64,000 bases of DNA from Ascidiella aspersa. Taxonomy: Eukaryota. Below the pieces are notes generated by a model. It made no database searches, was not told the DNA's origin, and worked only from the letters and a program-made list of their open reading frames with translations. The translations under genes and the position numbers were made by a program. The DNA lies in NCBI GenBank assembly GCA_963924565.1, contig OZ004609.1:25296001-25360000 (forward strand). The letters run 5' to 3'. This document shows, one piece after another, positions 26,591 to 29,500 of the stretch (its first letter is position 1; each line of letters starts with the position of its first letter).

Positions 26591-29500
26591 TTAAGAGTAG
26601 ATGGTGATGACCTCACGGCCGCCACCCCGCACCATGAGCACGCGGTCGAGACCTTCGGTAAGAACTTCAAGGAATTCGATATCTTTGAGATGTAGGATTA
26701 AGGAACATATCGACAAAAGTTAATTATGGCAGCGCATATTTCAACAGACCTAGGTTAAAGTTATACCTTTACAAGACTAAACGTTATAATCGAAGTTATG
26801 GAGTAATTATCACAGTATAAATTACGCATGAGATGTGTTGGCTTCATAGATTGAGAAAAAACATATTATCCTAGGTTTTACTTCTCTTAATATTTTTTTT
26901 TACTCCTAGTTATATCCAAATAAACCAAAGTTGACCAAAACGCACATAGCATATGCACTCCGTTTTGTTGGCTAGAATAACTTTAAAACGGCAATATACA
27001 ATTCGCCGTATAGAATATAGATAGTTAACAAATCGCATTATATAAAGGTGAATTTGAAAAGGATACAGTTTGCTTCGCGGGCCTGGTTCTTTCCCTTGGG
27101 TGGCCCGGGCAGGTTGAGGATGACCAGTTTGGCTTCATGTGACTTGTTCACGATCACCTCGTTCAGCTTAACTGCAGTGTGCATCCGACGCACATTCATC
27201 GACTCGCTGGATGAACAAGTAACATTTTAGGCTTTGTAAAAATTTTTTTTAAATATATATGAACGGGTGAGCAATGAGCATCTATAGCAAACATCATAGA
27301 TGGTTTCAAAAGTTACCTTAAGTAATACAACGGAGGTCTTTATTTTAAACCACTTTCGAATAAGAATCAAAGCCGTTAAATAGCGTTAAAAATCAAACAT
27401 AACTGGACATAGAGGATCACACTAAAAAACTAATCAATACAAATTAGTCAAACAGAAAATGTATCAGATGAAAACGTGACTAGTTTTACTCTTAACCAAC
27501 CGAACTCCATAACATAATCAATAAACATTTTATAAATTCGGCAAGCCGACAAACCGATGAGAAACAGCATTTACTCACGGGACGATGTTAAGAAGGTTTC
27601 CGAATTCCTTCTTTTTCTTCTTGGGCTCTTCGTCTCCGTCCGCCTGTTCCTGGGCCTTGGCCATTTTCTCCTGGTACTTTCCCGGCGTCCAGGTCATCTG
27701 CATCGCGTCACTGGCGCCGTCGTCGTCCGAGAGGTCCTGGGCGATTCCACCAGAGCTCGGGTTGAGACCCGGCTTTTCCTGTTGGCTGTTCGAGCGGCTC
27801 AGGCGGATGTGGCCCATGGCACTGTTGAACTACAATGGAAATCGACTCGAGAGTTAGCGAGGACGACAATCAGTAGTAAGTCAATCTAAAACTGTTTTCT
27901 GCAGATCGCATTTCAGCACCAACGTTTTGCGATAATCGTACATTGTGCTACTTGCGTTCTGCGTCATTCACCTTGATGATGTTGACCTGAGTATGGCGCA
28001 GCAACGTTGGTGTAGTAATACAATCGCCAGACGAGCTTTATTAGCCTAGAATTTATGCTTAAGATGTGGGAGACCTACGAGGTGGTGTCATAAGGTGAAT
28101 ACAGTGTGTGGCTTTTCTGAGGAATACTTTGCTGAATATTCTATCATATTGACGAACTAGCGTTGATGATTGACGTAGCTGTATCCTAAATTATATCGTA
28201 CTATAATGTGAAATATTTTATTCTTCACTGTTCGGTAGTTCTCAGTGTACAGACCGAAACTATGTGGATTCCGTGTTAATAAGTATTTTGCGAAATATTA
28301 AAGCCACCGATATTAATAAGCTAAATATATATGTTTCGTATTCGTTATTTAAGGAATCCCACAACAAAAGAAGAGGGACAGAGGTACACGTTAAAAACAA
28401 TTCAAGTGTTAACATAGTGTTAACATAGTGTTAACATTATACAACCATACTCCTGCTTTGCAATGAAATAAAAACAACAACATAATGTAGCCAGGAATAA
28501 AGGTAGCCCTGGACAAAACTAAAAAGGTAGCAACCAAACTAAAACTGGTAAAAAGAGATAAAATAGGAAACGTGCAATTTCCCGCATAGACAGAAAAGCC
28601 ATCTTCATAACTGAACACTGAACAGCCTTGCATGCAAACATAAAACATATAAAAGTATTCGACCAAATGTGAGGATAAGAGGCATTCCCTTAGCAGCAGG
28701 ACAACAAAAAATGGAGTAACAAAATGAAATAAATCAAAACCAACGGCCGGTTACAGCCGCCATGCAAACTGAGAAACGGCGCACGACCGACAGCGAAAAC
28801 TACCTCCCCGCCTTGCTGATGGTTGCTTGGAGAGGTCTCTTCCACCGCTTGCCTGCTGCTACTTGCTGTAGCTTTGTGTGGCGTTTGGAAGCGAACACTG
28901 CGAGATCGCTCAACAACTTGGCCCACCTTTTGTCGATTATGACGTCATAGAGGGGTTGTTATTGATTGTTGTTTAAATATATTCGGATAGGTTTAAAAAC
29001 AAGTTTGTAGCCGCAAGATAAATGATGATTTGGACTTTTAGTAGGCAATCGCGTACAAAAATATGACTTTGCTACGAAATTTAAATGCGTGTTTTGTGTG
29101 AAAACAAAACCGACAATTTGTTTTGTGTGAAAACAAAACCGACAATTTATTTGGATAAAGGTAACAAACATTGCAAAAGCAATAAACTTTATAATAGCAC
29201 GTTATCTGAAACGTCTAGAAATACTCAAACCAGCCATCATACACACTGCAAAGTTGCAAAACTCGTCACGGCCCAAAAAAATAGCGAATAAAATACAATC
29301 GCCACGTTCGTGCATTTCCAATATTGCTATCTTTCACAGCAAAACACTTTTAAAGGCGTATTCAGAAAACTGAATAAATAGTAACACACAGCGAGCGTGT
29401 GATGATATTTTATATATCCTAAATTCATAAAATAATACTATAAAAATAAGAATGCTTATTACCTCTCTTTCCGATTCTTTCTTGGTCAAATTGAGGTGCT

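Follow-up and report, generated by a model that had tools for sequence, protein, structure and literature searches.

The 64,000-nucleotide window of the tunicate Ascidiella aspersa analysed here (contig OZ004609.1, positions 25,296,001 to 25,360,000) carries a K-Cl cotransporter gene (KCC, SLC12A4-7 type) that extends on the minus strand between about 49300 and 26594. Comparison of the full-length KCC P0270 with the window by tblastn gave 20 collinear matches between 48906 and 26594 with 72% identity, and the exons are collinear with KCC proteins, including the C-terminal domain. P0270 is transcript-derived and most likely the sequence of another tunicate; the taxa of P0188, P0205, P0223, P0231 and P0270 were assigned from sequence only. 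Within this gene, at 28926-28804, lies a candidate cassette exon of 123 nucleotides encoding 41 amino acid residues. The reading we favour, to which we assign a probability of about 60%, is that this segment would be a genuine coding exon in the linker of the KCC C-terminal region and descended from a module that occurs across animals.

The exon preceding the candidate is a constitutive KCC exon of 36 residues (29463-29570, minus strand), 35 of which can be aligned to the human KCC1-4 chains (E about 1e-10). This alignment halts exactly at ...ERE, at which point the exon closes with a complete codon (...LTKKESERE); its donor is GTAATA. The exon ending in ...ESERE is single-copy in the genome (308.6 Mb). 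After an interval of 1633 nucleotides follows the next large KCC exon (27579-27829, minus strand; FNSAMGH...MQMTWTPGK...FGNLLNIVP), which is in phase 0, aligns to P0205, P0223 and P0270 as well as to the vertebrate MTWTK region, and ends at a GTGAGT donor at 27578. The candidate is located within this interval, as is a putative, unproven micro-exon of 15 nucleotides in phase 0 that would encode VNIIK (27972-27986, minus strand) and that has a good acceptor (ctcAG) and a good donor (AAG/gtgaat).

The segment 28926-28804 (minus strand) is translated without a stop in phase 0-0 into a peptide with an xQxVVExS-like start, the RVxF-type sequence R-S-V-R-F, the sequence V-E-E-T-S and the end ...QQGGE. 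Its 3' splice site (28927-28946, minus strand; gacgtcataatcgacaaaAG) reads ...cgacaaaAG/GTGGGC and, with a pyrimidine fraction of 0.39 at -20 to -3 and an A at -3, is the weakest of 20 acceptors examined in the gene, the others having mostly pyrimidine fractions of 0.61-0.89 and C or T at -3. The 5' splice site is GAG/GTAGTT (28798-28803, minus strand). In-frame alternatives exist on both sides: an acceptor that would let the exon begin at 28908, and two donors (28845 and 28800). A preliminary description of this DNA had placed here a phase 0-0 exon with a weak AAAG acceptor, between ...LTKKESERE and VNIIK, and had pointed out two TGCATG elements downstream of it; sequence inspection bears this out in every detail. 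In the introns flanking the candidate two tandem repeats were noticed, an approximately 29-nucleotide unit, aaattgtcggttttgttttcacacaaaac, present twice (about 29090-29150, minus strand), and atgttaacact, present three times (about 28405-28440, minus strand).

With a 363-residue KCC fragment as query, 120 fragments of KCC C-terminal regions were obtained; they come from a wide range of animals and are in many cases spliced. Cluster look-ups supplied full-length proteins (P0198 is an oyster sequence). The linker past the ERE-equivalent junction was read in about 100 fragments, and in the KCCs of many animals a recurring module starts right at this junction. As read from these sequences, its pattern is an xQx[IV][IV][DE]xS start, then a basic [KRS]-V-x-F and then an acidic V-x-E-E-[ST]. 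Examples are the linkers of insects (VQSIVDQHH...[ST]KVRFQEP), of crustacean-like sequences (VDSILDSSRH...SPSKVKFSEE), of spiders (VQNIVDHHH...RVRFEE), mites (KSVRFARRKSS) and nematodes (KGVRFSDDES), of molluscs (VQSIVDQSRGTTVSPTKIQLEPVQEES), of cnidarian-like sequences (IQDVVEHSYRRRS and IQNVVETSYRTRS) and of rotifers (PQLVLERVRRNS). The tunicate peptide contains the three parts of the module in the same order, that is VGQVVERS, RSVRFQTP and AVEETS. Vertebrate exon 22 likewise has all three in this order, the last of them as VPEET.

A profile made from the linker segments of invertebrates (44 segments, neither tunicates nor vertebrates among them) gave 10.0 bits for the candidate, a score reached with p = 0.0022 in 10,000 composition-preserving shuffles, compared to 3.1 bits for the reversed candidate and negative scores for the five other frames. 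When all 1590 stop-free stretches with a minimum length of 25 residues in the six frames of the 64-kb window were scored, the one bearing the candidate came first. Both parts of the profile set contributed, the candidate obtaining p = 0.007 with a sub-profile of the VxF-bearing sequences and p = 0.039 with one of the sequences without VxF. Global alignments of the candidate to 15 linker segments from diverse animals yielded p values mostly between 0.001 and 0.09, the best being that with the cnidarian-like P0231 (p = 0.0007).

Vertebrate KCC2 has at this place its exon 22, which holds Ser932, Thr934, Ser937 and Ser940, residues whose phosphorylation raises KCC2 activity. The preliminary description had proposed that the neuronal KCC2 exon of 41 residues occupies the same position as the candidate, and human KCC2 (PDB 6m23) agrees with this, as it contains a 41-residue insert at the same point (ERE/...PEEE/VQL). 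Like exon 22, the candidate follows directly after ...ERE, precedes a putative start of the VQLIH/AQLVK type, is in phase 0-0 and has the length of the human exon, and it lies at the same site of the disordered alpha8-alpha9 linker (PMC9355526, PMC4301019). The likenesses that had been listed for the peptide are all present: S8-R9, E-E-T at residues 29-31 (28-30 in human), the terminal E and R-S-V-R-F. They form part of a collinear series in which S-R is followed by S-[VI]-R...P, then, around residue 30, by V-(P)-E-E-T and lastly by an acidic end; a VQLIH-like element comes next in KCC2 and, as the putative VNIIK, in the tunicate gene. A gapped alignment would pair Ser8 and Ser10 of the candidate with Ser937 and Ser940, the latter being phosphorylated by PKC, dephosphorylated by PP1 and situated in a disordered region (PMC9355526). 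In agreement with the preliminary description, three papers restrict exon 22 to KCC2 and non-therian KCC4 (PMC10709408, PMC9355526, PMC4301019). The alignments in these papers cover vertebrates only, and PMC4301019 never uses the word "invertebrate".

On the invertebrate profile, vertebrate exon 22 sequences reach 6.7-15.5 bits, the starts of exon 23 mostly 0-8 bits, and the candidate scores at the same level as vertebrate exon 22. Among the vertebrate segments, exon 22 thus appears to have retained the ancestral module best, and since both the candidate and exon 22 fit a profile made from invertebrates, the module would predate the vertebrates. Direct comparison of the candidate with exon 22 is less clear. 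Against fish exon 22, which varies in length from 37 to 43 residues, p was 0.006-0.008 in global and 0.13 in local alignments, and against other exon 22 sequences it was 0.004-0.06. The two sequences have few identical residues, and by profile their similarity falls short of significance: a profile made from exon 22 only gave 3.8 bits for the candidate (p = 0.07), and a phmmer search with the 41 residues against the PDB, KCC2 chains included, gave nothing at E ≤ 10. The earlier proposal of a module that predates the vertebrates is thus supported in the comparison with the invertebrate linkers, both by its p value against shuffled sequences and by its first rank among the 1590 stretches; the resemblance to exon 22 by itself is weak (p = 0.007-0.07). 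Shared descent is instead supported, by way of the profile, through the linker module common to animal KCCs. The candidate is probably homologous to the ancestral module that also yielded exon 22, and this module is most likely older than the vertebrates and probably older than the bilaterians, which would be an earlier origin than the preliminary description had proposed.

Several observations weigh against the segment being an exon at all. The open frame alone is weak evidence, because open segments that run in phase from an AG to a GT number 104 in the same 1633-nucleotide interval, and the candidate is open in a second frame as well; as the open frame means little, the case for an exon rests on homology. 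The codon-usage log-likelihood ratio of frame 0 amounts to -0.8, which is below every known-exon window and lower than the values of both other frames; it exceeds that of 99% of the intron windows, but this codon test is driven by GC content. The linker is of low complexity and disordered, which keeps the profile scores low and makes the alignments uncertain. The peptide occurs in no fragment of a collection of 5.8 billion proteins within the length range searched; the protein searches were made with the 84-residue stop-free stretch (candidate region 7-47), were limited in length and are uninformative on full-length proteins. Similarly, the downstream exon as query found no homologous proteins within the permitted length ranges, full-length proteins being outside their scope, and the 36-residue upstream exon found chiefly single-exon fragments read through from genomic contigs, its only useful matches being P0011, P0026, P0068 and P0107. 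The single metagenome match obtained with the 84-residue query (L003) was rejected as a chance match, since it has an internal stop, contains no KCC exon and was seeded by QQGGEVVF.

One might therefore regard the segment as a chance open stretch in a GC-rich patch of the intron and its likeness to the linker as low-complexity noise. Such a view would account for the many comparable open segments, the codon usage that is neither exon-like nor in favour of frame 0, the poor acceptor, the absence of the peptide from every protein and transcript searched and the weak score with the profile of exon 22 only. It does not sit well with the observation that shuffles keeping the composition still leave p = 0.002, nor with the fact that the best of the 1590 stretches occurs in the right intron, on the right strand and in the right phase, and that only the in-phase frame scores positively. 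The segment is, in addition, unique in the genome and not a repeat, and it matched no RNA family, a search of Rfam giving just a sub-threshold snoRNA-like match on the opposite strand; the pair of TGCATG elements downstream is independently unusual. The GC content of the candidate is 57% as compared to 32-37% in the flanking introns, a value that only 0.7% of the intronic 123-nucleotide windows of this gene attain. On balance we consider a chance origin improbable and think it quite likely that 28926-28804 is a real exon. The GC-rich patch extends about 65 nucleotides beyond the donor through the first TGCATG (28741-28803, minus strand, gtagttttcgctgtcggtcgtgcgccgtttctcagtttgcatggcggctgtaaccggcc), and this extension could be a conserved intronic regulatory block.

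If the exon is real and derived from the ancestral linker, it might still be co-orthologous to vertebrate exons 22 and 23 together, these being tandem duplicates that arose in the vertebrate lineage, and the match in length of 41 residues would then be coincidental. Both vertebrate exon starts do fit the ancestral xQx[IV]xD motif (IQSITDES in the one case, VQLIHDQS or AQLVKDRH in the other), the length of fish exon 22 is variable, and the exon-22-only profile responds weakly to the candidate. Linkers from termites and other arthropods (P0152, P0159, P0250, P0257) possess two tandem VQxxVD-like units, which read VQTLVDFN...EEKLPL and VQAIVDHHH... and parallel the starts of KCC2 exons 22 and 23; such arrangements hint at repeated internal duplication of a short VQxxVD-like unit. 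Moreover, the micro-exon that would supply the start of an exon 23 in the tunicate is unproven. VNIIK is similar to VQLIH/AQLVK, with which vertebrate exon 23 begins, and 27986-27972 is the sole segment among six in-phase segments of 15 nucleotides to fit V-x-[ILV]-[ILV]-[KH], a match with an estimated chance of about 0.02 (post hoc); VNIIK is absent from the transcript-derived sequences P0205, P0223 and P0270, which were taken to be from other tunicates. Nevertheless, the order in the tunicate gene, with the candidate followed by VNIIK and FNSAM..IRLS, mirrors that of KCC2, the element of VNIIK and FNSAM..IRLS resembling AQLVK and DRHSALRLES. The invertebrate profile places exon 22 clearly above the exon 23 starts, and S-R-(G)-S-[VI]-R...P and V-(P)-E-E-T are common to the candidate and exon 22 in the same order. 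Co-orthology with both exons seems rather unlikely to us, and the candidate might be a strict one-to-one counterpart of exon 22.

In several animals a block at this junction can be present or absent. NCBI isoforms X2 and X3 of a thrips KCC (SLC12A4-like) differ solely by a block of 35 residues at the junction (VQSIVDLHRNNVDAKTSTKVRFQEPQADDEGADTQ), the pattern of which is VQSIVD...TKVRFQEP..., two species of the stick insect Timema differ by a block of 40 residues at the same place, and in several crustacean-like transcript sets further blocks are present or absent there. These insect cassettes resemble the tunicate exon in their position, in their size of 35-40 residues and in being present or absent between isoforms or species; they begin with VQx[IV]VD and carry [ST]KVRFQEP where the tunicate exon has RSVRFQTP. 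In them the VRF motif stands farther from the start motif than in the tunicate exon, and the residue before the V is strictly basic (K or R). For the insect linker cassette we found database annotations only and no describing paper, and the literature on tunicate KCC, on isoforms of Drosophila kcc and on Rbfox together with Slc12a5 contained no description of the exon or of an invertebrate counterpart. The crustacean-like sequences also show a second optional block at the junction, SG..GRRLSLNQNP... (P0167, P0169, P0171 and P0172 versus P0163 and P0247), with an RRxS kinase site and an NP end like that of ...SIRRKNP in KCC2. Judged by these sequences, optional phospho-regulatory inserts seem to arise preferentially at the linker junction of KCCs.

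In the tunicate-like transcripts P0270, P0205 and P0223, ...KKESERE is joined straight to FSSVIK..., which corresponds to the exon that begins at 27829. The absence of the insert from these three sequences counts against a genuine exon at 28926-28804. At the same time, a direct join of ESERE to the next large exon in a transcript of another tunicate indicates that a skipping form exists, and this form and the insect block that is either present or absent would both fit a cassette. An exon that is real and constitutive in A. aspersa, was lost in the related tunicate and has TGCATG elements nearby only incidentally would also explain the difference between the species. In line with such a constitutive exon, the transcript-derived P0188 has a similar sequence (VGVMMERLR...) directly past ...ESQRE, and exon 22 of KCC2 has, to our knowledge, not been described as skipped, a point in which it would differ from the probably optional tunicate exon. 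Constitutive use is, however, difficult to reconcile with an acceptor that is the weakest of 20 examined in the gene, with a skipping form in three transcript-derived sequences taken as coming from other tunicates, with a homologous block that varies between annotated insect isoforms and with the enrichment of TGCATG (P about 6e-4), and we regard it as rather improbable. Provided that it is real, the candidate exon stands a good chance of being optional, and the weak acceptor, the skipping transcripts, the insect isoforms and the pair of TGCATG elements together suggest the anatomy of a regulated cassette.

The presence of (U)GCAUG in the downstream intron combined with weak exon definition is an arrangement that promotes inclusion by Rbfox. 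Behind the candidate exon, Rbfox-type TGCATG elements occur on the sense strand 38 nucleotides past the donor (28761-28766, minus strand) and 168 nucleotides past it (28631-28636, minus strand), the second within the palindromic TGCATGCA. The (U)GCAUG motif is that cited for Rbfox (bioRxiv 10.1101/2025.08.16.670673). The gene (22.7 kb) has 3 sense-strand copies of TGCATG, as compared to 11 for the whole 64-kb window; 2 of the 3 in the gene are found within 175 nucleotides after this donor (Poisson P about 6e-4 for at least 2 in 200 nucleotides), so that the motif is above background within about 300 nucleotides of the downstream intron. In its weak exon definition and in these two closely spaced downstream copies, the candidate resembles neuronal and muscle cassette exons activated by Rbfox. 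The Pfam domain Fox-1_C was matched neither in this genome nor in any control genome, a result that is hence uninformative on the presence of an Rbfox gene. Control of the candidate exon by Rbfox is conceivable, and we hold it with somewhat less than even confidence. Over the window as a whole and on both strands, TGCATG is depleted, with 20 copies observed as compared to 38.9 expected from dinucleotide-preserving shuffles, all 100 of which held at least 20 copies.

The N-terminal RVNFVD sequence of NKCC1 is a PP1 docking motif of the RVxF type and is located next to regulated phospho-sites. In the candidate peptide, R9-S-V-R-F13 fits the PP1 RVxF pattern [RK]-x(0,1)-[VI]-{P}-[FW]. Like the NKCC1 site and other RVxF sites, it would lie in a disordered region, as the linker is intrinsically disordered in KCC2 (PMC9355526), and has serines in basic surroundings beside it; it differs from them in being short and degenerate, with S rather than K or R directly before the V. 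KCC2 has Ser940-Ile-Arg-Arg at the spot that aligns to the VxF motif, with an R (SIRR) in place of the F of the tunicate (SVRF), and only the tunicate sequence is therefore of the RVxF type. A strict [KR][VI]x[FW] motif was detected in 28 of 89 invertebrate linkers, compared to 2.0 expected by shuffling; these linkers are related to each other, and the 28 cases are thus not independent events. The usual context is [ST]K-V-[RKQT]-F-x-[ED], and the strict motif was encountered in insects, crustacean-like sequences, chelicerates and nematodes (P0152-P0265). It was absent from the sampled mollusc, cnidarian and other tunicate sequences and from the vertebrate ones (0 of 12 linkers). As the motif is short and in our sample otherwise confined to ecdysozoans, convergence is possible. 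We found no paper on an RVxF-type motif in KCC linkers. Given the enrichment in 28 of the 89 linkers and the fact that PP1 dephosphorylates the aligned Ser940, PP1 docking would be a reasonable and testable reading of the motif.

A related observation concerns the other end of the protein. The N-terminal coding exon of the gene (49310-49302, minus strand) includes seven residues identical to a stretch of the nematode C-terminal linker (KGVRFSDDES), and the KCC of the other tunicate begins with MSVRFQV (P0270, residues 1-7), which fits the RFxV motif of SPAK/OSR1. Short motifs of the VRF type thus recur at both ends of KCCs.

In the reading that we prefer, 28926-28804 would code for 41 residues inserted into the disordered linker of the C-terminal region, directly past ...KKESERE, and the exon would descend from the module with which this linker begins in the KCCs of many animals, vertebrate KCC2 exon 22 (...VPEET...) being the closest vertebrate descendant of that module. 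In view of an acceptor weaker than any of the others examined in the gene and of a transcript from another tunicate in which ESERE runs straight into the next large exon, the tunicate exon would be optional and included in a subset of transcripts. An Rbfox-type factor acting on the UGCAUG elements at +38 and +168 may help its inclusion, favouring neural or muscle transcripts. In the protein, R-S-R-S-V-R-F would place serines suited to basophilic kinases beside a PP1-type (RVxF) docking site and might so create a local phosphorylation switch, similar to the control of KCC2 Ser940 by PKC and PP1.

These comparisons suggest that the module regarded as KCC2-specific is ancient. Should the tunicate exon and the insect cassettes indeed be relatives of exon 22, the latter would go back to an old optional regulatory insert, whose origin and logic could then be tested in simple chordates and in flies. 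A specific hypothesis suggested by this is that the PP1 that acts on Ser940 originally docked on a [KR]VxF motif at the same spot. The distribution among the vertebrate paralogues would then reflect differential loss, the module having been kept in KCC2 and lost in KCC1, KCC3 and therian KCC4. A more far-reaching proposal, which we put forward tentatively and consider doubtful as a whole, is that the linker has carried an optional cassette since at least the bilaterian ancestor, with a PP1-docking [KR]VxF core beside serines for basophilic kinases, that KCC2 exon 22 is its fixed and modified descendant, and that the tunicate cassette is still switched by Rbfox in excitable tissue. According to this proposal, neuron-specific phospho-control of chloride extrusion would have been inherited and would not be a vertebrate invention.

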